Assembly: GCA_030704615.1 (NCBI GenBank)
Contig: CM060731.1
Coordinates: 14,942,001 to 15,006,000 of the forward strand
Direction of reading: 5' to 3'
Source: Takakia lepidozioides
Lineage: Eukaryota > Plantae > Bryophyta
DNA: 64,000 nucleotides
Below the pieces are notes generated by a model, which was given only the letters and a program-made list of their open reading frames with translations, had not been told where the DNA came from and ran no database searches. Position numbers and translations under genes: made by a program. Positions 12,601 to 44,000 of this stretch are shown piece by piece; within the stretch, counting starts at the first letter, position 1; each line of letters starts with the position of its first letter.

Positions 12601-12702
12601 AACTGGATTGCGCTCGAGTTGTTGCATTGTTATGCGTTTTGTCTCATAGGCCGTTTAGATTGTTGGTGGACATTCTAAACTTTGGCAATTTCTTTTCTTT
12701 CA

Positions 12703-13338: not shown

Positions 13339-16300
13339 AAACCTCACAATGAATGCCGAGAAAGAAAAACAAACCCAAACCCAGTATATACCACCAGCCA
13401 CTAATACACCAAAAGTGATTGTGGTTTGTTGTGATGCACTGCCAGTGTCCAAGCATTTGCACAGTCACCCATTTTTGCAACCGCCTCGAATCGTGCAACA
13501 CTGAAGTCAAAGGTGCTGCATGCTACAGCCATTCTCTGCAACTGAGCTTCTTTCCAAGCTGGTGCAAGAGAGTCACAACTTGATGTCTTTCTTCCTTCCA
13601 TACAGGGGCAGTGAGGAAGCCCCAAAGAACTCCACGATGCCTCGTTATCTACTCGCGCAGATCATGTACAGGTTACTTTTAAGAGAATGGTGGCAGCTCG
13701 TCGGACGCGTCAAGAAATTCGGAGGGGTAGCTCAACTGTCAGTACTCACTCTACCCCATTTGTGAAGGAGGAAACCTTTGGGATGGTCGTCAATGAGAAA
13801 TCCACACCAGCGGTTGCAGTGAGACAAGGAGAGTAAAATATGCATCATCAAGTTAGTAGTGGGTTGGACTTTCATCTCACGGAGTTGAGTAGCTTTGTGA
13901 TTTGAGAGGGGGAAGCACCTCCTTAAGCCATGTGACTCCACGACAGCAGTGGGAGTCACATTGTATGTCGGTCATTTTATGCACCGGGTCGAAGAGTGGA
14001 TGAACCCTTCTCCATAACCCAAAGGAAGATGGTGGGCCGTGCTTGTAGTAAAGAATTTATTTAGTATAGAGTGGGGTCGGAAATGGTGGGGTAGTAGCGG
14101 GTCAATATGCAAACTTCTTGTCTGCACCTTACCCACTTGAGTCTTCTTGTCATCGAGAGTCATGATATGAAGAGTTCCTGTGGAAATTGTAGTGCAAGCA
14201 AGTTCAGGTATCTATGGCTGCTTTGATTGCGATGCTTTCTTTTGGGTTTCAATCTTGATGGTTTTTTCCTTCTATTGCTGCCCATGACACTTAGTAGGAA
14301 CGCAGTAGTTGCTAGCCTTACTTCTCTGGCGATGCCCACCGCATGAATTTACATGTACCTAATGTTTCTGTCATTTACTTCACCAACCATGCACGACCTA
14401 AATGTCTCAGCAGATTGGTCCACAGGATTGTGAGCAGAGCATCTTTGTCTTGAGCGCCGGTTCAGGACCGATGTAAATGTCTCTCTTGTGAATGGATATC
14501 CACACGTTGAAAGGAGATTGTTCTTGCTTTCACTGGCTCCCTTTTGAATAGTTTTTGTTTTCAGACTCATCCCTCAGTTGCCTCTTCCTAGGTCCTCAAG
14601 TTAGCACAACTGACTTCAGAGGCTAGCTTGGACTCCATAGACTGTGTCCTTAGGAGGTCCTTAGTGACAGCAAAAGAGGAAGAAATGTTAAATTTTACAA
14701 GGATTATAATAGCCTGCATAGTCTTGACCCTTGTCCTGTTCTGTTTTGGGTCCTTCGTGGGTGGTACAACGTTGTTCTGTGGAGTCTACTCATTGAACAT
14801 TTGTGTAGATCTCCTTTTCTTTGTGAAGCCAGTCGAATCTGTGTTTGCAAGAATGGGAGAGTCAATGAACCAAAAATAGGACTTGGGCCACGGAAACAGA
14901 AAGTTTTGTTACTGGAAATGCTGACCAGTCCTTGTAATTCTCAACTCCCTCTGAGGATTCCCTGGACACCGATATGTGCAATTCAACTTACTTCAAACTT
15001 GTAAGGCGAAATTCACCTTCCTAATCTCAGGCACCTGGCCAAGATTCATCGTGCTTGTCTTTCTGTTGAATTATAAAATTCAAAGGAAGCCTAGGATCAA
15101 TGTTGAGAGGATCGTCGGTGCGACATCGGATAGATGTGCGTGCAGAGTTTACCTATGTATCGAAGTCCAAGTAATCGCATAATAAAAAAATGCTCCATTT
15201 TTTTTTTCCTGTTACATGTGAGGTTCTGAATTTCTTGCAAAAGAAAGGAGCTTAGTGACAGTTCTCTGTTGTTTGATGGTTTTGATGTTCAAGTGGCCAG
15301 GTGCATGTGGCTCAGGGTCTTGTGTTATTAGGCTTTGTGCTGTGGGAGTGGGTCGAAATGGGTTCAGTCAAACCCACACTCTACTGGAGAGCCTTGCAGT
15401 ACTTCTGGCCTGTAGGCCCATTGATATGCTCGGGCAGGGTCTTTGCACATATTTCTCTAGAAATGAGTAAGAGGTATAACAGGAAAGACAAGTCCGACTA
15501 AACCCAGGTAGGACAAATTTGCACCTGCGGAAACCAAAGTTGTTGGCTCAGGATTAAACAAGGTCTTATAAAAAACCCCAATGGAAGGCAGTCCAATGCT
15601 CAGGAAGCTCAAATTGGTTGGGCGTCTCGAATTTTTTTTATTCGAAGGTACCCCCAAATTTTTTGGCAGATACTCCCTTTAAATTCAGAACATGTAGCGT
15701 TAAGTCCAATCCTTTTGTTGGGCAGCCAAGAAATTCTCTAGCATTTTCGGAATGCTCGGCATTTGGAACATTGAAGCTCCCCTCACATGGGAGAGACAGA
15801 GAGCAGCTGCAACAACAAGAACAATGCATAATGTTGGAATTCAACAGAAAAGATCAAAGATGAAATGATTTACTGAGAACTCCACCCAAAAAGGATTTTC
15901 TTTTTTGTTGTTGGACAAAGGGATTTTTTTATTTTTTTGGGTTGACGGCCAAAGAAAAGGATATATTTTTTTCTTTTGGTTTTGCAAATAAATTTAAATA
16001 TATAACTTTTTTTCCCCTTTTTGGTGGTTTTGAGAAGGGCATACGCACACACACCCAAAAAGAAAACAAAAAAAAACCCCATTTTTTAAATCTTTTTTGT
16101 GGTTTTAACGAGGGCTGGAAAACATGTGCGCGTCAATGCACACTTGTTTTATAGCACACTCATGTATTCCATTCCTCTTCCTCCCCCTCTTAAAGGGCAA
16201 TGCCTTCATGGCCATATTCACCTTTCGGCATACGGTTTGTTTTGTTTCTACAAAATTCCGTTATGATTAACAAAAAAACATGCACTTCGCACTTATCAAA

Positions 16301-16911
16301 ATCATTGATTTCCGACATTATAAATCCGCAGTAATAGGCCCCTCCTGTCCACGGTGGATATAGGCTTTGCTTATCGGATCTGCTCTCGTTTAGGATTCGC
16401 TCACACAGAATCGGGTTTTGTTCACGCAATACGTAGTGTATTGGGGTGAAAGCAAGCTACGGTGACTCAAAAAAGTCCACTGTGTGGCATATGTGAGAAG
16501 TCCCAAGGTTTTTGAGAATTTTGATTTGATGATTATGGAAAAATTATAGTCGCTAGATTCATCCATGCGGAAAGATATGAACCATCTAAAGTTGACAGTA
16601 ATAGACACTATGACATTATTTCTATTTTTCCTAATACAAGACATTATTTCTATTATTTTATATTTTCGTTATATCGCAGCGGGAGTGAGGCTACTCTTCA
16701 TCTACATGAAATGTACTTTTAGTGAAACAAGTCCATTGTTTTACTTTGTTTCCATGCATTCATGTACTTGGCAAAATCAGTTTTTCGAGGCTCACAATAA
16801 TATATAGAAGTAAAAAATTTCACATTTTTTATGTTTTCTGTAGGAATTTAGTACCTTTAAGAGTAGAGCAATATTAATATGAGTCTTTTTTTATCATATT
16901 TGTTTTCTATA

Positions 16912-17209
16912 CCGTACTTGCCTATGCTATTCGTCAGGACCTTGCCGGAGTAATTAATTTTTCTTAAAGAAGGGATCCGGCAGCATTTTTTTTAATTTCT
17001 GCAGTTCCGGCAGTTTCACGATAAATAATAGAAAAGCACTCTTGTTGTGTGTATGTGTGGCTAGTGCAATGGTATTGCAAGTAAACATGGTGAGGTAGGT
17101 TTGGGGTTCGAATTTCTCTGACATTCGTTCCTGGGAAGGTTTTATTTTAAATTTTTCCGGCAGTCTGTTTTTGCATTAAATTATCATCGGACAACATAGG
17201 CAGGTACGG
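16912..17209. mobile_element. Tc1/mariner-pogo-type MITE
   Basis: TIRs CCGTACTTGCCTATG / CATAGGCAGGTACGG, flanked by TA on both sides (16910-16911, 17210-17211). Confidence 0.75.
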
Positions 17210-19293
17210 TAGTGAGTGCAAAAAGTCAACAAGTCCTTTTATGGACTGTGACACTGTCGTTTGTATTTTTCTACCGTCCATTACTTCGACAAATCAACTT
17301 CATTTCTTGGTGAGAATTTAAATATTAGAGCTTGTAGTAGTCGGAAACATAAGAGTGAGTCCCATTTCATCAGTAATAAAATTTTGTCTCTTAGGTACAA
17401 TTGAATCAAACTATGTCGTGTAAAACACGTGCTGTGACACAAAAATTGAGCCACCATAGTCTGCTTTCACCCATTGCTCTCTCAGGAGGGCAAAAAAAAC
17501 CTCCATACATGTCTGCACACAGAAAACCAATTGTTTTAATTGTCCTTGGCCCAATGCAAACAACCTCCATAGGGAAAAGTCCAAACCAAAAGAGAATTGT
17601 ACATACCTCAAGGTCATTGAAAAACTGTGACCATGCCTCAGTAAGGGTCTGTCGCAGTGGACCCCCCAAATCAGCAGTATGATTCTTCACGAGTATGAAT
17701 TCTTCGCCTCCAAGTAGATATTCAATTTCAGATGAGGGAACATAGTTTGAGAAGATTTCACTCTCAAGAATTGTCGTTGCAAATCTCGTAACTCGATGCC
17801 TTTTGACACCTGCAATGAGAATAGATCTTCGTATGTTAAAAAAACAATACAAGTTCTATAACTCCATCCTCCGGTCCCTTCGAGAAAAATTTCTTTCCAA
17901 AAAATACTTCGGTGGATCTGATAATTAGGTTCATGTTTGCTCCTCAAAAGACGAATATAAGCTTGAATGTTGTAAGTAGCTTTTCACTTTCTAGTTTTAA
18001 TTTGTAGAAAATGAATCTCGAATTTCGTCGTATCTTCAAGATTGTTGGTGGTTAAAAATTGATGGCACGCCGAGAGTGCTTTACAACATTGATATGGAAA
18101 TTGCAGATTTGAAGATTATACCAAGCTTCATTTTGTCGCTGGTACTTTGTGACAACTTTAAATTCCTCAGCATCGTCACTGACTTGCAAGTCGTTGGGAT
18201 CTCTGTCACTCATGTAACCTACTTATCATTCCGGCTATAATTTCCTCTCGAAACATATCATAAATATGTGTTGGTGCAAGCAATCCCATTAGTTCTATAG
18301 GCACAAATTGATGAAGAATCGGGAGAGGAACAAAGAGCTTCAAAGCTAACATTGGATGTAATAAAAATCCCAAACCTGCTGAATCACATTATGTTACGTT
18401 ATTCTGACAATTAATTTTTGTTAAGCGAGAACTCATGTTTACGACAAGTAAACAATCATCAAGACCTGGCAATGGGATCTCAAGGAGAAGCTAATCGAGA
18501 TGGGGACATGTCACAAAGCTCGTCTTTGGAGAGTTTTTGATGAAGTTGCTACACGCATTTATGAATTTGCGAACGAGGATATCATGGAGTCTTTTTAAAC
18601 ATTATGTGCAAAATCGAAGGTTGGGGGATGTTTCTATGTTGCCATTGATTTTATTACATCCAATCATGAATTCACATAGACGGAGTTGCTATAGGCATTC
18701 TCCAATCATGAAGTCCACCCATGTAAAGTCAATGTTATACGATTATATAAATCCACATATAATGTAGGAGGATGAACTTTCACACAGATGAAAACATGTC
18801 TTATAGTGTTATTTTGAGACGTCAATTTTGTAGATTTCGTGATCTTTGCATAATTCGATTTTCAACTTGAAAGAGATTTCAAACTACTATTTTGAGTTTG
18901 TGACCGTTTTGGTGCCCCTACTCAAACCATCTTTATGCAAAGCTCTCAACATTTCATTCTTTTTGTTTGTGTTTGCAATACCTTCGTTTGCCCTGCAAAG
19001 CTACTCTCATTATTATTTTTTGTGCTTCAAGTACATTATTTTTCCTACTTTGCTTTGACACTCTCAATCTCTTTGTATCATATTTCAAGCTCTATTTGTG
19101 CATCTCTATGTACTTCAAGTTCAGCTTAGTACAGTGTCTTTTCTCACTAATACTATTTTGTTTAGTTCAAGGTACAAATTGTCACATCTAACTACTACAA
19201 ATGAAGTTGCAGTTCATCTTCTACAATCCTGCAAGTACAAGGAGACAACCTAGTAGACGTATTAGTCAAGAGACAATTTGCACAATATGACTA

Positions 19294-19817
19294 TGTCGTG
19301 CGCATACATATCGCTACACAACTACATCGCTGTCCAAACCACACCACACATATATGCACAATAAAGTAGTCTAGCACAATGATAACCAAACTAGATAACA
19401 CACACTCTCACACAAAACATGCAATCCCTCAACATCACTCTTTAGATAATAGTCGAGCCAGGGGCACCCCAAGCTATGGGGACTCCACCCCACAACAACC
19501 TACACTCCCATCATAAGCACACTCAGATCTGAAGAATGCAGGAGCTCGGTCGCGCAGGCTCAACTCGAGAGAGATGAGCTGCGCGACTGCCGCTCTCGTG
19601 AAGATAAGACGGACCAGGTGTCAAACTAAACTTGACACCTGATTTAACACTTGACCTAAATCCAAGTGTTAAATACAAATAACTAGTTTTATGCTAGCTG
19701 TTTTCACACTGTGCTTATTTAACTTGACAGCTGTCGTGCGCATACATATCGCTACACAACTACATCGCTGTCCAAACCACACCACATATATGCACAATAA
19801 AGTAGTCTAGCCACAAT
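19294..19817 (-). repeat. G1 3' terminal repeat block B-GC-A-B
   Basis: TGTCGTGCGCATAC...CACAAT occurs at 19294 and 19732. GATAACCAAAC...TTGACA (19381-19729) recurs at 29050-29404. Confidence 0.95.
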
Positions 19818-20072
19818 CGCCCCCCTAGCTGGTGGATAGGTCCCTCTACCTCCAGATAGCTACTACAAGATGTAATAGCCACAGCCGTACTAAGTCCTCT
19901 ATCACTGTCTTATCGTGCTCAAACTACCAACCAAGAGGCCGGGTACAAGAGTAGCCCCATCGTTAGTCGCCGTCTTGCAATCTGTGAACTTGAGCCAGAT
20001 CTCGTGTGTTCAAGGTCTCCTAGTAGCTGGGCCTTGCGTTTCTTGTTAGCCTCCATGGTTGTATCCACTCCA

Positions 20073-23000
20073 CTATCCAATGCAATGTGGACATAACCAA
20101 TCCCCATCCGGAACCATCTCAAGAGGTGGAGTCAAGCATCCCATATGCCAACCTCTAGAGCACCGATCACACACCAGCATGGTGGCTGCCCTTTAGCAGA
20201 CCCACACAACATGCACCTCAAACCTGCAGATACCACTGCCAGGTTTGGGTCAATCCTGCCATCGACATTCGGAAGGTGACATGGCGCACAATTACGCACA
20301 TGGTCCTTCCAAGTTATGCCATCCCGACCCTCCAAGACCAAGACGCCTGAGGGCAAGACCCTCTCGAACCCTCAAAAATAACACGTCCTGCAGTCACATC
20401 CAGGGTCGTAGGAGCAGTCTGCTGCAGATAGACATAGTCACCAGGGTTGAATCTCCGAACCCCAGGACGATAGCCCCCACCACGTATGGTAGCATACCTC
20501 AACGTATCACGGTGTTGTGCAATGGCAAGGTTCTCGAAAGCCATGGGCATGACTCTCTTGAACAACTCTGCACGCTGCTCACATGCACGTGCCCACGTCC
20601 GGATCGTCAAGGTTAAGAACTGTAGCAGCTTCTCTGCGAATGGATGTAGGCAAATCCGGCTCTCGGCCAAAGAGAAGAAAGTATGGTGAGAAGGAGGCAA
20701 GTGATGCTTGCTTGCTGAACCTGTAGCCCATGGCTCCAGGTAACTGAAGGTCCCAATCTCCTAGGTGTCCCTTCTGCAAGCCATACTTGCGCAAACCCCT
20801 CTTTACTGTCTGAACAACTCTCTCTGCCAAGCCATCGGCCTCAGGATGATCCGAGAAGTGGTGCGGTGGTCTATCAAGGCCTTGTCACACAAAGCCTGAA
20901 ACTCCCCCAAGAACTCTCTCCCTTGGTCCGTGAGTACCTCAGCTGGAGCACCGAATCGCTAAGCACACAATCCAAGAATGCATACGCAGCTCCCTCACTA
21001 GCCTTATCAGGCAATGGAACCAATTCAATCCACTTGGAGAAGTGCTCCACCATCACCAACACGTACTTGTTGTGGCGCATGGTCAGTGGCAACGGCCCTG
21101 CGAAGTCAAGACTCACCTGTAGCCCAATCCCATGATCGGAAGAGGGTGCAATTGTGGAGTAGGGGCGTTGAATGAAGCACGCACCCTGTCACACACCATG
21201 CACCTAGCCACAAATTGTTGCACCTCTGTGTGCATACCACGCCACCAATACTGCCCTGCACTGAGTGCGTCGCACCCCAAAATGCCCCAACTCCTCATGG
21301 GCATGCCGCACTAACCGTGCCCGCTGTGTTGGGTGAGGCACAATCCTCACTCGACCATCCTCCCACACTCGGAGCAGGTGTGTCCCCTCCCACCTGAACC
21401 TCTTGGCTCGTTGTAGGATCCGATCCCTCTCCTTGGCAGTCATAGTGGCTGCCGTGTCTCCACTGCGGAGGTAGTCCAACACAACTGAATCCTCATGTAT
21501 ATCTTTGGCGCCACCCTGCTCATTGCTGGCCTCAGGGTCCTCAGACACTTGATCTACAGTCATCCCTGTTGTAGGTCCAACCTGGCCTTCCGCTGCCAAG
21601 ATACACAGAAATGCAGATGCATGCCATCCGGGCACCATCTCCTCGTCCGTCTCACCATGCCACCGAGCTCCAGTGTCATCCTGCTGGCTCGTGCATGGAT
21701 TGCGACTCAACCCATCTGCATTTCGATTGACCAAACCCGGTCGATGCACCACCTGAAAGTCATACTCTTGAAGGATGAGTGCCCACCGTGCAAGCTTCCC
21801 CGTAAGCTTGTCTGACTCCATCAACCACTTGAGTGGTTGGTGATCCGTGACAAGGGTGAAGAGATTGCCGTATAAATAGCACCTGAAGTGTGCCACGGCC
21901 CACACTGCAGCTAAGCATTCTCCCTCATATGAGCTATACTTAGACTCTGCAGCATTGTTCGAGCGGCTAGCATAAGCCACTACGAACTCTCTTCCCTCAT
22001 CATCCACCTGTGTGAGCACCGCTCCAAGCCCCAGCATGCTCCAATCTGTATGCAGCTGAAAAGGACGCCCCCTGATAGTCGTCTCAAGATGGGCGCCGAG
22101 GTCAACCTCGCCTTGAGCTCTTGAAAAGCTTGTTCTTGCTCATCTTCCCACTGCCACTCCTGGTCCACCTTGGTCAGCTTGGTTTAGAGCCTTTGCAATG
22201 GCACTAAATCCCTTAACAAACCGTCTGTAATAGTTTGCTAACCCCATGAAAGCTCGAACTCGGCTCACATCCGTGGGGCGTGGAACCTGTGCAATGGACT
22301 CTACCTTAGTCTGCTGTACCCCCAATCCTCCAGGATATATCATGTGACCCAGATACTCAATCTGGTTGTGGAAAAACTTGCACTTGCCCGGATGTAACTT
22401 CAATCCGTGCGTCCTCAAGCGCTCAAATACCCCCTGAAGGTGTCTCTCATGCTCCTCCACCGTAGCACTAAAGATGATGATGTCATCTATGTAGCACCGA
22501 GCAAACTCCACCCCTGCTAGAATCCTGTCCATGACTCTTTGAAACTCAGCGGGAGCGTTTTTAAGCCCAAATGGTAAGAACCGCCACTGGTATAGGCAAT
22601 CCTTCCCGTGCTCATTGATCCCCCAGAATGCCGTCTTTTGCTTATCCGCCTCCTTGATCGGCAACTGGTGATATCCGGATCGTAAATCCAACGTGCTAAA
22701 GACCTTGGAATGCCCAATGGCATCAAAGATCTCCTCTGGTGTTGGCATGGCATACCTATCGGACTTGGTCTGACGATTTACAGGCCGGTAATCACCGCAC
22801 ATACGTCTCTCCGTCCAATTGCCATAGACATCCTTCTTAGCTGGCATCACTGTGGCTGAAGCATACTCTCCACCAGAGAGCTCCACCAAACCTGCCTCCC
22901 AGAGATCTTGAGTCCTCATCTGAATCAAAGACCTCTCCATGTCACTGTATCTATAGGGTCCGAAAGATTGGCGTGTCAGTGGCCAACTCAATACGGATCT

Positions 23001-26000
23001 CTTGACCCTTCAGTGCTCCCAAGTCCTTCAAACTGAAGGCAAAGCAATTCCTGTAAGCCCTCAGGAACCGCCGTATACGTCGTCTCTCTCCTCCGGTGAC
23101 AATGGGTCCAATATCAGGCTCCCAATTGTCCTCCGTAACTGCAACCTTAAGTCCAGTGGGCTTAGAGGTAGAGAGGACCGTCCCGTGGTTGCTATGCTGC
23201 AACCTCTTGAGCAGTACCCCCTTCCTGCTCAGTCAATGACAAGGCCTCATCCTGCCCCATCATCTCATCATTGAGAACCTCCTCATCCATCACAGCTGCC
23301 TTCGCTGCCAACTCCCTCTGAACCTCGAGCACCTCCCACATGTGCCATGGATGTCTACACCTCGTGGTCCTCACCGGCTCGCCCCACTCGCTGCCTGTAC
23401 CGTCTCGGTAGGCAGAGAGACCGTCAAGGGAAGTGCACTCCGCACTCTACGTTGCTCAGCCATAGCCAAGCTGACAATCCAGGTCAAGCAATTGAGATCC
23501 ATTGCTTGCCCCAACACCTGACGACGTGATGCCTCAGAAAGAGAAGGCACCGCCGTGGTCCCAGTGGAAAACCCCATAGCCCGCTCTCGCTCGTCGGCAT
23601 TAGGCTCCACTAACTGCTGCAACTGAGCATCCCACAGGAGGCCAGGTCCACCATCCCGAAAAGCATGGGATCCTGGGAAGCTGAGCAGTGTAGGTAATGC
23701 TGCTCGTGGTTGACCCACCCTGTTGACCACTGCCAAAGGCGAACGGTCATCGTGTCTCACACGTTGAGACTGCCTTCCTGTGTCCAAAATGCCATCCACG
23801 GTGAGGTGTGCTGGCCGCTGCACCCCATCAAATGCACGCTTGAGCAGTGCGGGTGGCATCAAGTTAGTCCACCATAGTCGTGGACGATGAGCCCGTGACC
23901 CCACTGCAGCTGCATCCAGCAATACTGCTGACCCAAGCCACGACCGGACTTGATGCACACTGGCCATCACCCTGGCCCGAGAATCACCCATCAGTGGCAC
24001 ATTCTCCAAGATGTATGCCGGAGATACAGCCTGATGAAGCTGCAAGTGGCGCAAAATCCGCACCATCTCCCAAAACAGACCCGTCCTCGAGTCTCGCAAT
24101 CCATTGCCATGCCCGGCTGATGAATGCCCTTGGCAGGGCCAACCTGCCACTACCAGATCAATGGAGCCAACCCGCTCCAAATCCTGCGCCCCCAGCAACG
24201 CAATGTCTGCTGGCAAGGCCTGCTGATATCCACGAACTGCAGACACGGCAACAACTCAGGGTGCTGCTGCACCACTGAGCAACATGGCGCAGTGAGACGC
24301 GTCGTGCAGTCTCATCCCTCTCCACATACAGGTAACGTCGAACTCGTACACCTGCCTGCAGCACTGCAGCCAATCCAGTGCTGATCCCGCCAAATAAGTC
24401 CAGAAGGCATATGCCTTCATCCGGTCGCTGCCACACAAGAGGTGTGGTGTCCAATGGCGACAACTGAGGTGGCCCTGGTGCAATCACCGCACTCTCCTCC
24501 TCTCCTGACGGTACAAAAGCTTCTACCCAAGCTTGTTGCACCCGTCCATCAGCAGCGTGCTGCAAATCCTTGCTCGTACCCCACAACGAGTGTGAGCAAC
24601 CATGGCAGGCAACTCCGCCGTACCATGCATGTCATCCTGCTCTGCTGGAGGTGGCACATCCTCTGCATGGGCATTGCCTTCCAGCAACTCTCCAGGCCAA
24701 CTAACTGCAGCTGTGAAGGCGGCTAGTGTTGGCATCTTGCCCCGCTGGCAGCTGCAATACCCCCAATGAATGTCACAGGGAGCTGTGCACGGCGACCATC
24801 CCCTGACTGCCATCCAGGCCTGTAGGATGCTGACTCCTCCCAAAATCCAGGGTGAAGCCCATGGGGTATAACACTGCCCCCACCAACGAGGACATCGTAA
24901 GAGACCGCGTCTGTCACAATGGCCTTGGCTCGCATCACTGAGCCATCTACAGGATGATCCGGCTGCAGTCTAATAGCCAACTGATGCCGTGTCATGCCGC
25001 GAGCCTGCTCTGATCCTCCCAGAGATGTCTGTATCTGGAAAGGACAAGGCTCCATATCCGCCTCCATGAGGCCCAAACCTGCAATAGCAGCTCTGCCCAA
25101 CATCAGTGGCTGAGCTCCTGAGTCCAACAAGACCCGCAGTGGCCCTACTTCTTTGCCCCGGTCCACTCAAAGTGAAAATGCCTCCCTGGTTGTCTAACAA
25201 GACAACTCCAGGTGTCACCATGGCGCGCTCAATGGCTGGCCTAGCTGGCAGCTCCGTCAAAGCTGCAACTTGCCATGGCGCAGCCGTGGCAGTCTTGACC
25301 CTCAAATCCGAGGATCCCTCTGCCACTACACCTTCCACTAACTCCGCAGAAGATGAAGTGACCTCCCCACTCTCACAGAGTGTTGCTGCTAGTCTGAACA
25401 CTGCAGCTGGTCTCACCCCCGGCGTCGCAATCATGTTGCCGAGAACAGTGGGGCCTGACACACAGAGGTGGCTGCCCCAATAACACACCGGCCGCACTAG
25501 CCTTGGCAGCAGGAGTCAATGCTGCACGTGTAGCTCTCCCCAATGGCATAGTAACCTCCGCCTCGGTAACAGTCAGAACTAGGTGCCATGGATGGCGTCG
25601 ACACAGTCTCCGCCAATGTGAATGACTGAGGAAGCCTTGCCTGACGGCTTGCCTCCCCACGCTGTGGATCCAATTCCACCTCTGCACCTCGTGGCTCAGG
25701 AACTCGTGCTGCTCCTCGAGTCACGGCTGCAGCAGACTCCACCTGCTCTAGTGGTAGTGCTGCTCCGCACATAAATCCCATGCCTCCCATATCTCCTCCC
25801 TCAGGAGCAGGAGGTGGACCATCCCGCCTGGGAGCCTACCGCCTGAGCTATAGCCATGGCAGCGAGCCTCGCTTGAAGCCTTGGCCATGCCTTGGTCAAC
25901 ACCCTGACCTCCGCGTCCTTGGCCATGTGAGCTTGCCCTTGGCCTGCACCTCGTGCCCGACCACCTCGTCCTCTTTGGGCTGGTCCACCTCGCCCCCGGC

Positions 26001-27292
26001 CACCATTGTTCCCTTGGAACTGGCCTGGGCGCAACTCAGGATGCAAGTCATAACACTGGGCATCTCCATGCCCATACTTGCCACAATGCCCACACTGCAA
26101 CTGTGCAGGCTGTGCTTGTGCCGGCCTTCTGCCACTCTCTGGGCAATCTCTCTTGACATGGGGTCCTCCACATGTCCAACATATCACCCCTGGTTGCTGT
26201 TGGCCTGCAAAAGATGCCACGGGCCTCTGCACCTGAGGTCCCCTGTAAGCTCCATGGAACTTGGGCTGGGCAACCTTGCCCCCCTGACCACGCTGTTGGG
26301 CAGTCCCTTGTGCTTGTGGGCTGACAGCTGTGCCCGTACAGGCATGTCCTTGCCAAATCCAATTGTAACAACTCGCTCCTCCACCATGTTGAGCTCAATC
26401 CGCTCAGCCAGCAGAAACACATCTGCTAATGTGGGTTGGGCTGCTTGTAACAGGGTTGCATCTCGCACCCTTCTCTTGAGCTCCTTGTCCAGAATTCCAT
26501 ACCAAAACTGGATTGCCTGAGCTTCAGTAACCCCTTGGGTCACACTTATCAAGCGCCTCATACGAGTGTACGCCTCTCGCAGGCTCTCACTGGGTTTGCG
26601 CTGGAAGTCTTGCAAACTTCGCAGCTTCTCTGTCCGTACACCTTGGTAGTTCCTCCGCAACTCCTGGAAGAACTCCACCACCGGGTTGAATCTAGGCACA
26701 TGTGTTGTAGTCGTGGCAGTAGTACCTTTTGAACTGGTACCACCTTCTACCAGCACTACTTGCTCCACTACTAGTGCTGGCAGTGGGAGCTATTGGTACT
26801 GATGCAGCTACTGGTCGCGTCGTGCCTCGAGTAATGGAGACGTAGTCAGGGTGACCAATACATCCTCCACTCCTCAATCTCTGCTTCATGTCCTCGCCTG
26901 AACTCGTGGTAATCGTCCATAGGCGGGGCTTCCAAATGCTGGAACAGTCCCTTCCACGCCATGAATGGGGTGAATAGCTGTGGATTGCGCATCTGCTGCA
27001 AATCACACCAGCTGTCGAACTCTGGATAAAGTCATCCAACTCGATTGTGCCCACAGCTCCAGAGTACCTACGAGGCCCCTTGGTAGCTCCACATCTCCTC
27101 CATGTCGTCCACAACAATGGCGAATGAAAGTGCACACCTGTTGATGAAGCCTCCGAGTCTGTGTCTGACTCTACAGTAATTGAGGGTGGCGGTGAAGGTG
27201 GTCTGAACGAATACCTCGTCTGTGAACCCACTCTCACTGTACTGCTGTAGCCGTACTCCCCTCAAAACCCTTGGGTAACTCCGTAATGACAC
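20073..27292 (-). pseudogene. G1 gag-pol polyprotein (Gag, 2 zinc knuckles, protease, DNMT, RT, RNase H, integrase, PHD), broken by small indels
   Basis: CWTCGGPHVKRDC and CGHCGKYGHGDAQC; VLLDSGAQ; LDLRSGYHQ, PFGLKNAP, YIDD; YSSYEGECLA, TDHQPL; H-H-C-C integrase zinc finger, SLDFAGP, AERVVQTVK; stop after WLCPHCIG. Start position approximate. Confidence 0.92.
23450..24420 (-). CDS. DNMT3-like C5 cytosine DNA methyltransferase domain inside G1 pol, between protease and RT
   Basis: Motif I LLDLFGGISTG, II YVERD, IV IDLVVAGWPCQGHS (catalytic Cys), VI ILENV, VIII AHRPRLWWTN, IX ERERAMGF..GTT, X RRQVLGQAMD, in canonical order. One frameshift near 24275. Confidence 0.92.
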
Positions 27293-29049
27293 TCACAATG
27301 TGCACCTCCTCCACGTGACACTATAAGGCTCTAGTACTAATCTAATAGTGACACGGGTGGGCACCTGTTGCAGTCTAAGGGTCATATCCCAATGGCTCAG
27401 GGCACCTGCACCTGCATCCACCGCAAGAACTCCTATGGTTGGCTGGTCATCAACCCAGCCTCACCAAGAAGAAACACTGGTGGTCTTGCTGGTCATCACT
27501 CCAGCCTCACCACCGACAGCATACTCTAGGATTGACCGGTGATCAAATCCGGCCTAATCCCTATGAAAGCAAGCGCCCACACAAAACCAACATGGCGCAC
27601 AGTCAAGCATGCAGGTGTTGGGGGGGATCCAAACACAAGAAATCAAAACATCAACACCCCCACACCAAAATCCAGCAGCAACGCTGATCCTGCAGAATAT
27701 CCCAGCCCAAAACCCCGGACTGACTGGCCTCCACCAAGAGAGGCTTTGGCAACTACAAGTACAAGGTAATGAAAATAGTACAGAGATGGGGGGAAGAATA
27801 GAAGCCGCCCAAGCAAGATCTAATCCTGATCTATGCTATCAACTTCCAGACTTCTCTCAAAGTGCCTCGCTCTGCATGATGGTAAGGTGTAGGAGGTATA
27901 TCTATGTCCAGAAACCTGCCACTAACTTGTCCCAAGCTACAGTAGCTCGCTCTAACCAACCCTCCTCCTCTTTCTGCCAGGTAGAGACAAAGCAACACTC
28001 TGCTATCTCCCGCTCACTGAACACTAAAGAAAACAAAGGTAGGGTCTGATAGTCTCTCAACTCGAAAGCTTTGAGACGGTTGCGGGTGTCCTTCATTGCG
28101 AATGACTGCATCGCCTTCAAACAGAACAAACTTGTCATTGCTAATGAACCCCCGCTCGTGGTTGCCTTGTGCAGAGCGGTCCGCTGCAACACTGTCTAAT
28201 TGCACAAACTTGTGCAGCTCCTGCTCCTCTGCTCCAGTACACCACGGCCTTGTGGCTGAACACCTTGGTCCCCGGGGCTGTTTGGCTGTGTTCCAAGCCT
28301 AGCTTTCACCCACTTTGGTATTTCACCTACAGCTGCAGAACTGCTGGCTCCAACAGAGTTCTGACTGTCCAAGGCGATATTGAGGCCCTCAATGCCAACT
28401 ACAGCAGTCTGTTGTCTACTGCTAATGCCTGACTCCCAGTATGCAATCAACTCGTCCAACTGTTCTCCACTCAAATCAGTCTGAGTTCCTTGGGAAACAT
28501 AAATCGTGTCCCCTTGTGTGCACAGCTAAGAGAAGAGACCTGCCCTTCAATTACGTCCTCATTTCCCCCAGCCATGCAAGAGTACATCCACCAATTTGTC
28601 TCTCATATAGACCAGCACAGGTTCTAGAGACAGATTGTGGATCTTTTGATGGCACACTCACACTCTAAAAATTCCATAGATTTTTAGCAGAGTCCCCAAA
28701 ACAGAAACCTGCATCCAGCCGTCCTCAACATAGCGTCCCACTCCCTCTGGGCCTTGCCATCACACCACCAGCTGCCATCGACATATCCTCCGCAGCCGGC
28801 GACGCCCTTACAGTGGAAGCACACCTCGCCAATGCCAACAGAAATATGGGCAGACCACCATTACTCTCTCTTCTACCACACCATTGCGACTGGAGATGTG
28901 AGATGAACTCAAGCTAGAGCCGTTCTATGCTCCTTGCTTGAGCTGCGTACAAGACCATGACCATCTATATTATAATAGTGCTTAAAAAAACAAAAACATC
29001 ATATCTAGCTTAGCACTGGAAAACTAGATAGTGCTCATCTCTCTCGAGT

Positions 29050-29404
29050 GATAACCAAACTAGATAAGGACACACACTCTCAACACAAGAAATATGCAAT
29101 CCCTCAACATCACTCTTTAAGATAATAGTCGAGCCAGGGGCACCCCAAGCTATGGGACTCACCCCACAAACAACCTACACTCCCATCATAAGCACACTCA
29201 GATCTGAAGAATGCAGGAGCTCGGTCGCGCAGGCTCAACTCGAGAGAGAGGAGCTGCGCGACTGCCGCTCTCGTGAAGATAAGACGGACCAGGTGTCAAA
29301 CTAAACTTGACACCTGATTTAACACTTGACCTAAATCCAAGTGTTAAATACAAATAACTAGTTTTATGCTAGCTGTTTTCACACTGTGCTTATTTAACTT
29401 GACA
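29050..29404 (-). repeat. G1 5' terminal repeat (A only)
   Basis: Near-identical to 19381-19729. Ends TTGACA on +, followed by the TSD. Confidence 0.95.
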
Positions 29405-29654
29405 ACTATTACAAATGGATACACACTCTGAAAAAAAACCATCTTGGAAGAAGAACTGAATCAGTGAGAAGGTGGCTGCCAAAGCGATTATTAATGATGG
29501 TGAGGAAGATTATCTTGATTGGAATAAGTTCAAATTGTTCCACAAGTTTATAGAAGGAGAGCTACTATACAAGAGTACCTATGCTCAGCAAAACCACAAA
29601 TTGGTATGAGTTTATACACTAGAGTTGGGTATGTCAATATAGATCTCCCACCTC

Positions 29655-29975
29655 TGTTGGATGATGAGGCATTGGAAGCGATAATGGATGCAATTGAGAG
29701 TGGAAACATGAACATATGCAAAGCTGCACAACATTGGAAAATTCTTTTTTTAATCTTTGAACGATCATTTGACAGGTAAGACTAGACATCGGAAACTAGT
29801 GCAACAGTACTCTCAAAGGAAGAGGAGGCTATGGTGGTGGCACGGATACTGAAGATGCAAGACACTGACCACTCAGTTACAGTTCAACAACTGAAATTGA
29901 AGGTGGGGGAATTAACTCAAATAAGAGACACCATTTTCTGATGGTGTCCCAAGAAATTCTTGGTGGCATTCTACA
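29655..29975 (+). pseudogene. Degenerate pogo/Tigger-type transposase N-terminus (HTH-psq plus CENP-B HTH)
   Basis: Across frameshifts: DEALEAIMDAIESGNMNICKAAQHWKI..LNDHLTGK..VLSKEEEAMVVARILKMQ..VTVQQLKLKVGELTQ..FSDGVP.NSWW. Confidence 0.75.
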
Positions 29976-30207
29976 ACTTGGTTGTCGAATGGAAAAGATA
30001 ATGAGAGTGGGGGAATTCTCGTCGATCATATATCACATATGTGATAGTATGGATGAGGTGCAAATGGAAACATACTCTTATTTACACTAACTTCGGTTGG
30101 CGTTCTCTCTCATAGTATGGATGAGGGATGAAAACCTCTCTACATAAACCTTGGGGAAGGATTTTAACTTAATGTTTCTTCAAAGTGAATACCACAGTCA
30201 TTCTAAA

Positions 30208-30352
30208 GTAAAAGGTATGACACCTCCGCAAGGAGGTTGGATCACAGCAGGATGGTGGATAACTTTGTGACACCAATTGTGGATTGACCACCGCGACCAC
30301 TTCCAATAAAGTTTGTGCCCATTGCCAGTGGTGGATAACCAGCGGATATAGA
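30208..30352 (-). repeat. Dispersed repeat of about 145 bp; a paralogue at 47005-47141 + 52081-52090 is split by element G4
   Basis: Shared GGTTATCCAC..TGGCAATGGGCACAAACTT..TGGAAGTGGT..AATTGGTGTCACAAAGTTATCCACCATCCT..GGAGGTGTCATACCTT. Confidence 0.85.
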
Positions 30353-31667
30353 GGATCAAGCACCCTGGGAAAGTTATGGCTCCAGTCAACTCGGCTCTGA
30401 ACCTTCTATTGCGGGTTCCGCTCGGATTGTCCGTGAAATCGGGATTTCCCTTGTCTGCGTTGTTGGTACTTCTATTTCCATTTCCCACAAAAGGTGTTAA
30501 GGGGCAGTTGTTTCACCTCTTTCTTATCTCGCTTGTCTAGCTGCCTCCGGAGAATTATCGACATGATCTGAAACCAGTCCATGTTTTGCCGCAAAGATGT
30601 TTAATTTTCCCTAGCCTTGCAGACGCTGGTCATGACATGTTTTATTGGGTGATACCCAAGCCTATGAGGGTAAGTTATTGTATGTCGTAGTTTGTTGTAT
30701 CTCCTTCATGTTGTCGTGCGCATACATATCGCTACACAACTACATCGCTGTCCAAAACCACACAACACATGTGCACACCACACACTAGTATACCACTAGT
30801 CTACCACTAGTCCAGGTCCAACCACTAGGCTACAACTAGTCAGTCACTAGGCTGCCACTACGCTGCCCACTATGGCAGTCACTAGTCCACACAATGATAA
30901 AGAAGAAGAATACAAGCACAAGCTCATGCGAGCTCACAAAGCTGAAGCATAAACTCATGCATATATAACCTCATCACTCAAATACAAGTCAAGCCAAGTG
31001 CACCCCACGCCATGGGGAATCCACACTACGGCGCCATAGCTAGGCGCGGTGAGGCTCAACTCGAGAAAGATGAGCCTCCCGCGCTTGCCGTGAAGATAAC
31101 CACTCCAGGGCCTAAATCTGCCTTGACCCCTGGATTGACACTTGGGCCAATCCCAAATGTCAATATGTAAAAGCTAGCTATTTCCTAGCTAGTTTCACAC
31201 TAGTGGTAAAATAACTTGACAGCTGTCGTGCGCATACATATCGCTACACAACTACATCGCTGTCCAAAACCACACAACACATGTGCACACCACACACTAG
31301 TATACCACTAGCCACTAGTCCAGCCACTAGTCCAACCACTAGGCTACAACTAGTCAGTCACTAGGCTGCCACTACGCTGCCCACTATGGCAGTCACTAGT
31401 CCACACAATCGCCCCCCTAGCTGGTGCTTAGGTCCCTCTAAGTCCAGGTAGCCACAAGATGTGATAGTGACCATAGCCTCACTAAGTCCTCCACCACTAT
31501 CCCTACTACACTCAAACTCGATAGATCAAGAGGCCGGGTGCAAGAGTTGCCCCATCGTTAGTCGCCGTCTTGCAACCTGTGAACTTGAGCTTGGGATCTC
31601 ATGTATTGACTCCTATGAGCTTGGCCTCCCATGTCTTGTTAGCTGCCTCCAGTCATGTCCACTGCCA

Positions 31668-38950
<7,283 letters not shown>

Positions 38951-39631
38951 GACACTCAACCGGTCATGAACATGTCCCTAACCCCTCTCACAAGGTAACC
39001 GAGAACCTGTTGCGGCTTATGGTTTGGAATACTAAGTTCCTAACATAGCCTACACCTGTACCTGCATCCACCGCAAGCACTCCTATGGTGGCTGGTCATC
39101 ACCCCAGCCTCACCATCGACAGCATGCTCTAGGACTGGCCGGTGATCAAATCCGGACCAATCACCTATAAAAACAAGCGCCCACACAAAACTAGCATGGC
39201 GCACAGTCAAGCATGCAGGTATGGAGGGGATCCAAACACAAGAAATCAGACGACAACTCCCCCCACCAAAAACAACTCCACGGTGTTGCTCCTGCAAGGA
39301 CACCCCAGCCCAAACCCGGACTGACTCTTGCCTCCACCTACGGAAAGGTCTTGGCCTAATGAGAGGGTGGAAACTACGAGGAAGAGAAGCTAAAGCAATG
39401 CCTAACCCCAGCATGCCCTCATCCCAACACTCTTCCTCTCCTCTCCCTCACTTGCATGACCATGGGAATATCATGAAGATACTCCTCAAACCGCCCTCCA
39501 CGAGCTTCAAAATTCGGCCTTCCAGACCACATGCCAGTCCTTAGGCAGTCCACCAGTGCCTCCACGAGTCAGCACAGGCCGTCCACAGGTCAACACGGGC
39601 CACACCAGCACAGGCCCACACAGCTCACTTC

Positions 39632-40168
39632 CACAGGGCACAGCCTGTCACAGCCCCTCACAGCCCGTCACAGCCCCAAAGGCCCAGGCACGCCTGTCAC
39701 AGCCCCTCACAGCCCGTCACAGCCCCAAAGGCCATGGGCACGGCCTGTCACAGCCCCTCACAGCCCGTCACAGCCTCAAAGGCCATGGGCACAGCCTGTC
39801 ACAGCTCGCCACAAGCCTGTCACAGCCCGTCACAGCCGCACAGGCCTCAGGCACAGCCTGTCACAGCCCGCACAGCCCGTCACAGCCCCAAAGGCCACTG
39901 GGCACAGCCTGTCACAGCCTGACACAGCCCGTCACAGCCCCACAGGGCACAGGGCACAGCCTGTCACAGCCCATCACAGCCCATCACAGGTCACAGCTTG
40001 CCACAGCCTGTCACAGCCCGTCACAGCCCCACAGGCCACAGGGCACAGCCTGTCACAGCCCCTCAAGCCCGTCACAGCCTCAAAGGCCTCAGGCACGGCC
40101 TATCACAGCCTGACACAGCCCGTCACAGCCCCACAGGGCACAGGGCACAGCCTGTCACAGCCCATCAC
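39632..40168. repeat. Minisatellite of 9-10 bp CACAGCC(T/C)GT units with a roughly 50-bp higher-order period, in the G2 5' internal region
   Basis: Dozens of CACAGCCTGT / CACAGCCCGT / CACAGCCCCT units. Confidence 0.95.
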
Positions 40169-40664
40169 ATGGCCGCTCTGGCAGTTTAGCCATTTCTCCA
40201 AGGGGTTAGCCACGCCAAGCTAGGGTTGTGTGTCTCTGGACTCTAGGCTTCTTTCCACCGAGCTATGGTGGCTGTGAGGAAATCAGCAAGGTATCCTTGC
40301 TCTTTCGGCTCCCACACACCACCATAGTAGCCCCAAGCCATGAGGTGGTTGCCACAACCAAGCCTTCTTTCTCACTTAGCCTCCCCAAACACGCCACTAA
40401 ACTCAATGGCAAACAACCAAGCCCTGCTGGTTCCCAGCCCTTGTGAGCACTCATTCAAGCACTCCCCTCATTGGCCATAGCATCTGTCTTAGAGCCTATT
40501 CCAGCCCTCTACACCTGTTGCTTCAAGAGTTGCGCTCCCTTCAAGCTTGAAGTTGAAACCCCAACTCACATAGGCCCTACAAGTGCTTTCTTTCACTCCA
40601 AGTGGAAACCAGCCCTAGACCTTCCGTTCTAGCTCTCTAAGGCTTGAAAACAAGAGCCTCAATG

Positions 40665-41000
40665 GGCTGAAGGCATGCTCCACACATGCCCCACTCTCAC
40701 CATAAGAGAATCAGCTCCTTTGCTTCATTTCTTGCACCCACAAACCTGATAATACAAGCTTCAGCAGGCTGAAAGCATGCTCTACATGCCCTACAGGGAA
40801 ACCAGCCCCTTCCTTCCTTTCTTGCACTCCCACACCTAAAAGTGCAAGCCTTCACCAGGCTGATAGCATGCTCCACACATACATTGCCCTCACATAAGGG
40901 AAGTCAGCCCTTCCCTCTTCCTTGCTTGCCCTCCAAGCTTGAAGATGGAAGCTTCAATGAGCTGAATACATGCTCCACACATGCAACCTCTTCACACAAG
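40665..41000. repeat. Four diverged tandem units of about 95-100 bp in the G2 5' internal region
   Basis: GCTGA..(G/A)CATGCTC(C/T)ACA..CAGCCC recurs near 40669, 40771, 40862 and 40964. Confidence 0.7.
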
Positions 41001-44000
41001 AGATATCAGCCCCCTATCTTGGCTCCTTGGCTCCTTGATGCTCTCTCTATGACAAGACTAAGCACTCCATAGCCTTTGCCAAGCTCCTGAAACCCTAAGG
41101 CTTACATTTCCAGCCACAAGACACTTCTCTTGTGGTGCAAGAACTCTTCTTCCAAGCTCTGAAACCTAGGTGCACATTCCATGGCCTTGCCGCACCTCTT
41201 AGCTCCTGATCCAGCCCTGCTCTTGCCATGACAAGAGCCCTCTCAATGCTGAAGCTCGAGATTGAAACCCAATCTCACCATACTCCACAAAGTGCACTGA
41301 TTTGCCCCAAGCAAAATCAGCCCTTTCGCTTGGTCTTGCAATCCTTCACACAATGAAAGCTCGCATTCCCAAGTCCAGTTCTCAGCTTTGCCACCAAAGC
41401 CACTATAACCTGCTCTTGACTGGTCCTCTTCCCAATCGTGCTTGCTCATGCATGTACACAATCTGGAACCATCAAGGTGCTCTGGAATTACCTGCAGCAT
41501 GGTGCTTTCATCTCTGAAGCTGAAGATCGAATGCCAAGGTCTACCACCTCGTAACCCACATCGCCTCCGCTTCTAACAACTAAGAGCTCCACGGTGCTCC
41601 TTGCATAACAACTTGGTTTCTCTCATTCTCAAGCAAAAACCACAAGTGCTACAACTAACTCGTATCTGGCACTCACAGATACGAGCTGATCTTTCTCGAG
41701 TGATAAAGAAGAAGAATACAAGCACAAGCTCATGCGAGCTCACAAAGCTGAAGCATAAACTCATGCATATATAACCTCATCACTCAAATACAAGTCAAGC
41801 CAAGTGCACCCCACGCCATGGGGAATCCACACTACGGCGCCATAGCTAGGCGCGGTGAGGCTCAACTCGAGAAAGATGAGCCTCCCGCGCTTGCCGTGAA
41901 GATAACCACTCCAGGGCCTAAATCTGCCTTGACCCCTGGATTGACACTTGGGCCAATCCCAAATGTCAATATGTAAAAGCTAGCTATTTCCTAGCTAGTT
42001 TCACACTAGTGGTAAAATAACTTGACAATGTTGTTAATTTGCATCATATTTTATTTGTTTGTAATATTATGTGGTTTGTTTGTAAGATGTTTTAGAAACT
42101 AACATTGCAGTGTGATTTGCAGTCCCAATTGGCATGGGTTGGGCAGATTGGTCCAACCCCTTTTGCATGCAGGCGACCCGGATTATGCTTTGATGTGCCC
42201 AGAAGACTAGTGAAGGATTGGCCATCAATAGCGTACATCCCCAATCCCAAAGATTGTTGGGATGACAATACCATCTTGGAGTACACATAGCTATGTGAAT
42301 CTATGTTGACAATCCGACTTGCTGTCTCTTATGATCCATTGCTGAATTCCACCGATTCTTCACACGACGATGATTTGTTCGTCGCGCCTCCACGCGGAGT
42401 TGCTGCCATCCGTAATTTTGTGCTCTATTATCAACGTGAGCTTTATGTCAGAAAGCCAATCTTCTCAATCACTAGATGTGGGATGAAGCAACATATTGCC
42501 CATGATGGATTGATCCGTGGAGTTTCACGATCAAATCAACGATGAAATCAATCATTGACATGAATATGAATATTCCGAGGAATTAGATACGAGGGAATTG
42601 GAAAAATATCTAGTATGCTGCACAAGTAATACATAATATGTCATAAGCTCATTTGAGGCATTTTAATCAACCATCTTACATAACATTTGGTTCTTAAAAG
42701 AGACAAAGAGTCTAGCCTAAAATAAGAGATTGTTTAATTCTTCTAACTAGACTTTCTTTAGCTTCCCATGGCTTCTCAATGGGTGAGGCGCCTTTGGGTG
42801 GTTCACTGTACCTTCTGGTTCGCGCCTTTCCAGAGGAGATTTGTGTTTTGTCGATTAGAAGACGTAACTCTTCCAATGGAAATCTTAGTTGAAAGTGTCC
42901 AATTCCCGAAAGTGGGCGGATCCTAAAACGAGTGTTGTTTGACTAATCATAGCTGGAAAGAGATGACTTTTTGATGTGGAAACGTGGTCGGAAGTAGTCT
43001 GAAAGGGAGTTTGAAGAAATTTCTGCCCTTTACAACTTTACTGTGACAATGATGGGCTACTTGGAATACTGTCAGCAAAGCTTGAAACATGTTGATACAA
43101 TGAGTTGCAAAATTTGTCTTGCTGGTGCTACAGCCTTGACGCCTGGGGTTCAAGTTATTGATTGGCATGCAATTTTAGAACTACACCCTTGTTTGCAAGA
43201 GGATCTGCACAGCTGTTTGCCTGAAATGGCCATAGGGGATTTGCTGGCAACCTTTTGGAGACGTTAGCACTCTAGACTATGGTCATATATCTGTGAAGAA
43301 CCTACAGCTTCACTATGGGGTGACGTCAACTGATCTCTAGCCAATCTTGCCTCAGCATCACACAACATTCTCCCTCTAGGATTTGCACGGATCCGACGAT
43401 AATCATGTTACAGGTTCATTTAATGTCAGTGTAAGGGTTGGCTTTGGCATCATACCAGGAAGCAAAATGTTGATTCTTTGCCGATGTAACCCTCTATGTT
43501 ATACAGAGGTGACACATGTGGTTGCACTCTCAGTCAAACCGTCCTGAGAAATGGCTAGAGAGGTGAACTTAAATATGTCATGGGAAAGACAAAGATAGAA
43601 ACAGTTTGATGACGACAAGGGCCCATGGAACAAAGTAGAAAAACGAATTTAAATTTGTGGGAAGGCCAAAGCACCCAAGAGACATAAGAACAAGAACCCA
43701 TGAACCACACAAGAAACAAATGGTAGTACGAACAACTAAGCGTTGTGTGAAGGCAAAATGCCTCAGAAAGACAGTAAGAAAGAAAATCTGCAATGTCGTG
43801 TGTGTTTGTAACAGTGCACAAAGTCCACATTACTGGACATCAGAAGAAGTGAAGAATAAAGAATGAAGTTGGGAACAAGCGGAAGTGGTGGTTGGACTAG
43901 CTCCAACCAACGTCTTCTAGTTGTGCATGCCCATGTGTATGCAAAGATTCTGAGAATTTATAATATGTCCTTGTCAACATCTGTTGATGTTGGTAATACT

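Follow-up and report, generated by a model that had tools for sequence, protein, structure and literature searches.

KnitGypsy-Dnmt3 of Klebsormidium nitens is a Gypsy retrotransposon that carries a Dnmt3-like domain within its pol region (de Mendoza et al. 2018; PMC5890265), and the legend of Figure 4c in the same paper notes that it joins DIRS-type repeats to Gypsy domains (PMC5890265). That paper gives no target site duplications (TSDs), palindrome, primer site or mechanism for the element, its survey includes neither liverworts nor Closterium, and its supplements hold no element sequences (PMC5890265). In the literature searched, the name KnitGypsy-Dnmt3 appears in no other paper, and nothing else relevant was found on integrase, Gypsy or DDE in connection with split direct repeats; the survey of plant long terminal repeat (LTR) elements behind REXdb mentions neither Marchantia nor Klebsormidium (PMC6317226). 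In this work, we describe three retroelement copies (G1, G2 and G3) from a 64,000-nucleotide stretch of the genome of Takakia lepidozioides, hereafter the window. We assign them to the KnitGypsy-Dnmt3 lineage from sequence features, namely a methyltransferase upstream of the reverse transcriptase (RT), split repeats together with Gypsy domains, and pairwise protein similarity. The layout of such elements is already on record (2018), and a first-pass annotation of the window overstated its novelty; their anatomy and mechanism are not on record in the literature searched. As far as we searched, what is new is the presence of these elements in liverworts, a moss and Closterium, their TSDs, the conserved palindrome, the predicted self-priming, the blunt joint between repeats and an apparently intact copy in Marchantia.

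Read in their own sense, G1 and G2 both have the order A-PBS-internal-PPT-B-GC-A-B, where A and B are the repeats, PBS is the primer binding site and PPT the polypurine tract, and the part of G3 that lies in the window is the matching 3' block. The first-pass annotation had reported this order, and both self-BLAST of the 64-kb window and direct reading of the element ends agree with it. We consider it somewhat probable (about 0.55) that this integrated form is a circular permutation of the reverse-transcribed DNA, produced via an end-joined intermediate that is cut at an internal palindrome. Coordinates refer to the plus strand of the window; all three copies lie on the minus strand, which is the element sense.

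19294-29404, minus strand: G1, a complete but degenerate copy of 10.1 kb with broken reading frames (self-BLAST, ends read)
29405-29408, minus strand: TSD on the 5' side of G1, TAGT in element sense, identical to 19290-19293
29050-29404, minus strand: G1 repeat A1, with TGTC at its start (96.6% identity to A2)
19732-19817, minus strand: G1 repeat B1, with GACA at its end (self-BLAST, ends read)
19730-19731, minus strand: G1 spacer GC (ends read)
19726-19735, no strand: G1 palindrome GACA-GC-TGTC, both integrated ends abutted with a 2-bp spacer (motif count)
19381-19729, minus strand: G1 repeat A2 (self-BLAST, ends read)
19294-19380, minus strand: G1 terminal repeat B2, with GACA at its end (self-BLAST, ends read)
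19290-19293, minus strand: TSD on the 3' side of G1, TAGT, which is ACTA on the plus strand (ends read)
30712-42027, minus strand: G2, a complete but degenerate copy of 11.3 kb with the layout of G1 (self-BLAST, ends read)
42028-42031 and 30708-30711, minus strand: TSD of G2, ACAT in element sense, which is ATGT on the plus strand (ends read)
41702-42027, minus strand: G2 repeat A1 (100% identity to A2)
31224-31409, minus strand: G2 repeat B1, 186 bp (self-BLAST, ends read)
31222-31223, minus strand: G2 spacer GC (ends read)
31218-31227, no strand: G2 palindrome GACAGCTGTC (motif count)
30896-31221, minus strand: G2 repeat A2 (self-BLAST, ends read)
30712-30895, minus strand: G2 repeat B2, 184 bp (94.7% identity to B1, with indels within a short micro-repeat)
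60936-64000, minus strand: G3, the 3' part of a third copy (integrase-PHD-PPT-B1-GC-A2-B2), cut by the window end (self-BLAST, ends read)
61444-61530, 61442-61443, 61023-61441 and 60936-61022, minus strand: B1, spacer GC, A2 and B2 of G3 (self-BLAST)
61438-61447, no strand: G3 palindrome (motif count)

The B repeats measure 86/87 bp in G1, 184/186 bp in G2 and 87 bp in G3, where about 87, 185 and 87 bp had been proposed. The A repeats have ~327-420 bp and are nearly unalignable between the window copies except for a central motif. The 10-bp palindrome GACAGCTGTC had been said to mark every B/A joint; the window contains it at each of the three B1/A2 joints (3/3) and nowhere else, compared with 0.08 occurrences expected from shuffled sequences, none of which reached three (0/100). 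G1 and G2 have perfect 4-bp TSDs directly outside the TGTC at the start of A1 and the GACA at the end of B2, so that these duplications bracket the whole A...B structure, again as first described. The exact join claimed between A and the terminal B holds only in part: the A2/B2 joint is TTATC/ATTGTG in G1 and G2, and TTATCT/ATTGTGG, with one extra T, in G3, whose A1 lies outside the window. The layout of the window copies is confirmed as real and far beyond chance.

For relatives in other genomes, the DNA flanking the best protein matches to the window RT was fetched and its ends were read. These matches are from Calypogeia fissa, Marchantia, Sphagnum, several Closterium species and K. nitens. 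The best of them is from C. fissa, with 80% protein and ~75% DNA identity to the window element, and the window RT is ~52% identical to a K. nitens protein. Complete copies among the fetched loci are listed below, NN standing for the 2-bp spacer.

L001, C. fissa: complete copy with the layout A-internal-B-NN-A-B, TSD GTCA
L024, C. fissa: complete copy, TSD ATGT, spacer AT; the joint is GACAATTGTC, with the palindrome kept
L003, Closterium sp.: complete copy, TSD TCCA, repeats 100% identical
L026, Marchantia polymorpha Tak-1: complete copy, TSD GGTT, repeats 99-100% identical, open reading frames (ORFs) open

Together with G1 and G2, they make six complete copies from four genera, all with TGTC...GACA ends and perfect 4-bp TSDs (6/6). 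A 5-bp TSD with an element end at GAC is possible in the liverwort copies and is excluded by the Closterium copy. Over the copies, B is 86-186 bp long and always the shorter arm, and A is 297-692 bp long. In K. nitens, loci L030 and L031 have the 3' block PPT-B-GACAGCTGTC-A-B and then flanking DNA; 3' blocks are all that was recovered from this species, L029 being too short, L030 interrupted by an assembly gap and L031 truncated where its contig begins. The actual integration sites are TGTC at the start of A and GACA at the end of B, which lie abutted as a palindrome inside every LTR unit, and the 4-bp staggered target cut is a DDE integrase signature.

The limits of that LTR unit are given by the signals for reverse transcription, which in the window copies are as follows.

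29038-29049, minus strand: G1 PBS ACTCGAGAGAGA, flush with the end of A1 (ends read, complement test)
29238-29249, minus strand: predicted G1 self-primer site within A1, in the probable transcript start region; exact 12-nt complement of the PBS (0/300 shuffles)
41689-41701, minus strand: G2 PBS ACTCGAGAAAGAT (ends read, complement test)
41865-41877, minus strand: predicted G2 self-primer site within A1 (13-nt complement)
19818-19826, minus strand: G1 PPT core AGGGGGGCG, abutting the first base of B1; conserved across G2, G3 and every fetched relative
31410-31418, minus strand: G2 PPT, directly before B1 (ends read)

No TGG-type site as used by transfer RNA (tRNA) primers follows A, and no tRNA gene is present in the 64-kb window; given the lack of such a site, priming by tRNA was discarded in favour of self-priming. 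In all seven copies where internal sequence follows A, the PBS starts at the base right after A and is the exact complement of a site inside A, over 12-15 nt (25 nt in Sphagnum), a length that 0 of 300 shuffles reached for each of the seven. Positions 1-12 of the two sites form Watson-Crick pairs in 84 of 84 cells. Moreover, two to three pair types are found at positions 2-12, indicating that the PBS and the A-internal site covary. RNAs running from the A-internal site to the PBS fold with their 5' end onto the PBS (z = -4.3, -3.2 and, for G2, -7.05), although their start was chosen by us, which favours this very pairing. These features point to a self-primed, Tf1-like synthesis of the minus strand. 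Self-priming is known in Tf1/sushi elements and has been predicted for the plant Tcn1 clade (PMC6317226). As in those elements, there is no tRNA-type PBS, and ~11-15 nt of the element's own RNA would pair with a PBS beside the LTR; unlike ours, however, they have two equal LTRs.

At the other end of the internal region, a G-run PPT runs up to the first base of B1 in each copy, being AGGGGGGCG in the window copies and liverworts, GGAGGGGGC in Closterium, and CTGGGGGGG or AGGGGGGA in Klebsormidium. With the PBS flush with A and the PPT flush with B, the LTR unit defined by reverse transcription is B-NN-A, which bears out the B-GC-A unit deduced in the first-pass annotation. In all six complete copies, the A2/B2 joint connects the last base before the PBS to the first base after the PPT.

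Regarding coding content, the window copies have broken reading frames, and their ORF pieces were profile-searched one by one, with the following matches in G1 and G2.

26184-26768, minus strand: G1 gag fragment (Retrotrans_gag, E 5e-4, weak)
23371-24246, minus strand: G1 C-5 cytosine DNA methyltransferase domain within pol (PF00145, E 2e-13, above the curated cut-off)
22140-22991, minus strand: G1 RT (RVT_1, E 3e-33)
21204-22037, minus strand: G1 RNase H and start of the integrase zinc domain (RT_RNaseH, E 4e-32; Integrase_H2C2, weak)
20874-21116, minus strand: G1 integrase core fragment (rve, E 5e-4)
33313-34638, minus strand: G2 RT-RNase H ORF (RVT_1, E 1e-33; RT_RNaseH_2, E 2e-33)
31965-32951, minus strand: G2 integrase in pieces (H2C2 and rve profile matches)

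The order of domains on the minus strand is gag (weak), aspartic protease (weak), C-5 methyltransferase, RVT_1, RT_RNaseH, Integrase_H2C2, rve and PHD (weak, in G3). The integrase of G3 gives stronger matches (rve, E 6e-13; Integrase_H2C2, E 2e-16). The PF00145 methyltransferase lies upstream of the RT in G1, L001 (5840-9859), L003 (8948-12139) and L026 (9797-13837), and it is this domain that identifies the lineage as that of KnitGypsy-Dnmt3. The intact Marchantia copy has an ORF of 1346 amino acids (aa) with the methyltransferase and another of 1043 aa with RT, RNase H, H2C2, rve and PHD. Among solved structures, the closest are Ty3 Gag-Pol (7q5b, E 9e-97) and Ty3 RT (4ol8). Aligned to the integrase of prototype foamy virus (PFV), the element has D (..ID..), D (..SDQG..) and E (..G..ER..) at the conserved acidic positions, which we take to be the catalytic triad. 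No Phage_integrase domain matched in any searched ORF of the window copies or their relatives, and no tyrosine recombinase was found in ORFs of at least 90 aa on either strand of the intact Marchantia copy.

Judged by these matches, the elements are of the Ty3/Gypsy type with an H2C2 and DDE integrase. The protease-RT-RNase H-integrase order, the DDE/H2C2 integrase, the TG...CA ends, the 4-bp TSD and the placement of PBS and PPT are all as in that group; the two equal LTRs are missing, and every copy has A...B-NN-A-B. The first-pass annotation was right to call the family an integrase-encoding Gypsy, but it missed the methyltransferase domain and the self-priming. A PHD finger follows the integrase core at 61845-62120 (minus strand) of the window, at 12266-13012 of L001 and at residues 994-1038 of the second ORF of L026. 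Chromoviruses have a chromodomain at this place, and the PHD finger may be a chromatin-targeting module.

How could a DDE integrase produce such a layout? Full-length complementary DNA (cDNA) would have the form (B-NN-A)-PBS-internal-PPT-(B-NN-A), and its two ends would be joined head to tail, into a 2-LTR circle or an equivalent end-joined form. An integrase multimer would then cut one internal GACA-NN-TGTC palindrome on both strands, after CA. With a 2-bp spacer, this cut would directly leave recessed 3' CA ends and 5' overhangs of 2 nt, of the kind on which strand transfer normally acts, and concerted insertion with a 4-bp stagger would give A-PBS-internal-PPT-B-NN-A/B, the slash marking the joint. 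Both the 2-LTR circle and the cutting of its palindrome by integrase can reasonably be inferred from the topology of the integrated copies. The integrases of PFV and human immunodeficiency virus type 1 (HIV-1) do cut 2-LTR circles at the palindrome where the two LTRs meet, yielding processed ends (PMC1180852, PMC1905944). Two findings that the first-pass annotation had held to be incompatible with such a cycle did not turn up: symmetric LTRs were absent from the six complete copies, and a tyrosine recombinase from the searched ORFs.

Several points nevertheless weigh against a permutation through an end-joined intermediate. The sample is small, with six complete copies from four genera, and the intermediate is deduced from integrated copies. 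A symmetric circle would carry two identical palindromes, and cutting the PPT-proximal one is expected to give the alternative form A/B-NN-A-PBS-internal-PPT-B; this form is missing from all six complete copies (0/6) and from all ten independent 3' ends (0/10), for which the binomial p is about 0.001 if both cuts are equally likely. Such a one-sided result implies either that the cut is directional or that the intermediate is not a symmetric circle. In addition, all six A/B joints are perfectly blunt, tidier than usual host end-joining; B1 and B2 of G2 differ (94.7%) while its A1 and A2 are identical; and the transcript start, placed at the A-internal primer site, and the polyadenylation site, placed beyond it in the 3' A-B block, are predictions. 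Only tentatively, and as something slightly less probable than its denial, do we propose that an entire ancient DDE-integrase lineage, from Klebsormidium and Closterium to mosses and liverworts, replicates obligatorily via a 2-LTR intermediate that is opened directionally at its built-in palindrome.

The one-sidedness of the cut would be easier to explain if cutting came first and joining later. The palindrome in the left LTR of linear cDNA would be cleaved into a short B fragment and an A-...-A body, both products would be inserted from one intasome, and host end-joining would close A to B, with no need for a circle. This route predicts the same layout, TSDs and blunt A/B joint, and since B is always the short arm, the left palindrome is the one nearer to a DNA end. 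On the other hand, it demands precise repair of a chromosome break at every insertion, we found no precedent for it, and the preference for an end-proximal site is speculative; we regard it as unlikely. The perfection of the joints, six of six, could also mean that the A/B joint is inherited, a non-canonical reverse transcription of read-through RNA giving a linear A...B cDNA whose TGTC and GACA ends would be ideal integrase substrates. With the PBS after A1 and the PPT before B1, however, no canonical strand-transfer scheme copies B2, and the places where such a scheme would have its PBS (after B1) and its PPT (before A2) are occupied by the palindrome itself, which is neither signal. We find an inherited joint quite improbable.

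The order A1-internal-B1-A2-B2 is the defining split-direct-repeat layout of DIRS, PAT and Ngaro elements (PMC8969392), and one could suppose that a tyrosine recombinase integrates the elements while the DDE integrase is incidental. We give this practically no credence: no recombinase domain was found in any ORF searched, the RT, RNase H and integrase are nearest to Ty3, and the 4-bp TSDs are present in 6/6 complete copies while DIRS elements make none (PMC8969392). It is just as hard to credit that a conventional LTR element was misassembled, interrupted by a nested insertion or rearranged locally to give this layout. Assemblers do mishandle repeats, and one metagenome contig (L028, below) closes on itself; yet the layout recurs with different A and B sequences in three window copies and in independent assemblies of Calypogeia, Marchantia, Closterium and Klebsormidium, and each complete copy has its own TSD. 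Furthermore, the window contains conventional LTR pairs at 47149-47466/51615-51932 (95.6% identity; a Gypsy-type remnant with RNase H and rve ORFs) and at 3892-4065/6668-6841 (98.3%; an internally deleted Copia-type element with gag and RVT_2). Because these pairs were normally assembled, the assembly has no general problem with repeats and the split layout is not a habit of it.

Some of the copies and relatives have features of their own. In the window, G1 (19725-22277) and G3 (61437-64000) are 94.7% identical from the palindrome inward, through B1 and the integrase region, and their A repeats are essentially unalignable; this contrast suggests that subfamilies have recombined, the breakpoint lying at the B/A palindrome or close to it. 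Part of the difference in length between G1 and G2 comes from a tandem array of roughly 10-bp CACAGCC-type units (39570-40170), which G2 has in its 5' leader and G1 lacks.

In Marchantia, the L026 copy spans 6826-17656 of the fetched locus (AP019869.1, about 10,229,953-10,240,783), with A copies 99% and B copies 100% identical. It is apparently intact and very young, which makes it a candidate for an active element, in a plant that serves as a genetic model. Between its PBS and first ORF lies an unusually long leader of 2.7 kb (7123-9796) without a detectable ORF family. The first ORF is annotated as ordinary host genes in Marchantia (many, e.g. Mp_4g09160, Mp_8g17980 and Mp_6g11220) and also in Sphagnum.

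The Sphagnum fallax locus L027 (CM038202.1) differs in arrangement. At 17275-18110, PPT-B-GC-A is followed directly by the 25-nt self-priming site, so that a full B-GC-A unit stands between two internal regions, and a second A copy at 8654-9344 has no primer site or clear B. The arrangement resembles that of a tandem array or of a shared LTR. Another Marchantia locus (L002) and the JGI metagenome loci L004-L023, which are two old insertions each assembled many times, have no detectable repeats and could not be scored; the GACAGTTGTC joint is kept in L004 and L014. An ENA metagenome contig of 14540 bp (L028) is self-closing, bases 1-141 being equal to 14400-14540, as happens when an assembler collapses the A and B repeats; such elements can therefore pass as circular contigs. 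Its leader contains a 12-nt complementary pair, a candidate primer pair that cannot be placed without the A/B joint. A scan of metagenomes with the PPT motif returned a single contig (L025), unrelated, and a scan of viral contigs with the pol protein gave no match.

According to the textbook rule, an LTR element has two equal LTRs and its integrase acts on their outer tips; here this rule is broken while a normal DDE integrase is kept. The permuted layout spans hosts from Klebsormidium to liverworts, and a Dnmt3-carrying Gypsy lineage described only from Klebsormidium extends to liverworts, Sphagnum and Closterium. LTR finders will mis-delimit or miss these elements. If the proposed cycle is true, a retroelement can rely mainly on its integrase cutting an internal palindrome, and what is a dead-end by-product in retroviruses becomes a productive substrate. 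It would also represent a third way of ending a retroelement cycle, in which the split-repeat layout of the tyrosine-recombinase DIRS/PAT elements was reached independently and convergently with a different enzyme. The apparently intact young copy in Marchantia polymorpha makes the mechanism directly testable.

Compared with known systems, the window elements share with KnitGypsy-Dnmt3 the Gypsy pol, the C-5 methyltransferase upstream of the RT and, in two K. nitens loci, the PPT-B-GACAGCTGTC-A-B block; they differ in host, and their best match is in Calypogeia fissa. With the 2-LTR circles of PFV and HIV-1 they have in common a DDE integrase multimer and an internal palindrome made of two abutted ends. 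In those retroviruses, however, the palindrome arises by ligation of cDNA ends, as a side route, whereas here it is built into every LTR unit, and the ligated A/B joint, unlike the retroviral LTR-LTR junction, is not palindromic. According to the title of one paper, 2-LTR circles can reportedly feed integration. Another parallel is found in the circle junctions of bacterial IS3- and IS30-type elements, where abutted transposon ends with a 2-3 bp spacer are a reactive substrate of a DDE transposase; these are DNA elements without reverse transcription, and their spacer comes from flanking DNA. The split-repeat elements of the DIRS group (PAT, Ngaro and TOC1-like) share with ours the A1-internal-B1-A2-B2 order, the opening at the B/A joint and the implied end-joined, circle-like intermediate, but they use a tyrosine recombinase and make no TSD (PMC8969392), where the present elements have a DDE integrase, TG...CA ends, 4-bp TSDs and a Ty3-like RT. 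In its topology, the outcome proposed here would be that of the split-repeat DIRS model, with a DDE enzyme in the place of the tyrosine recombinase.

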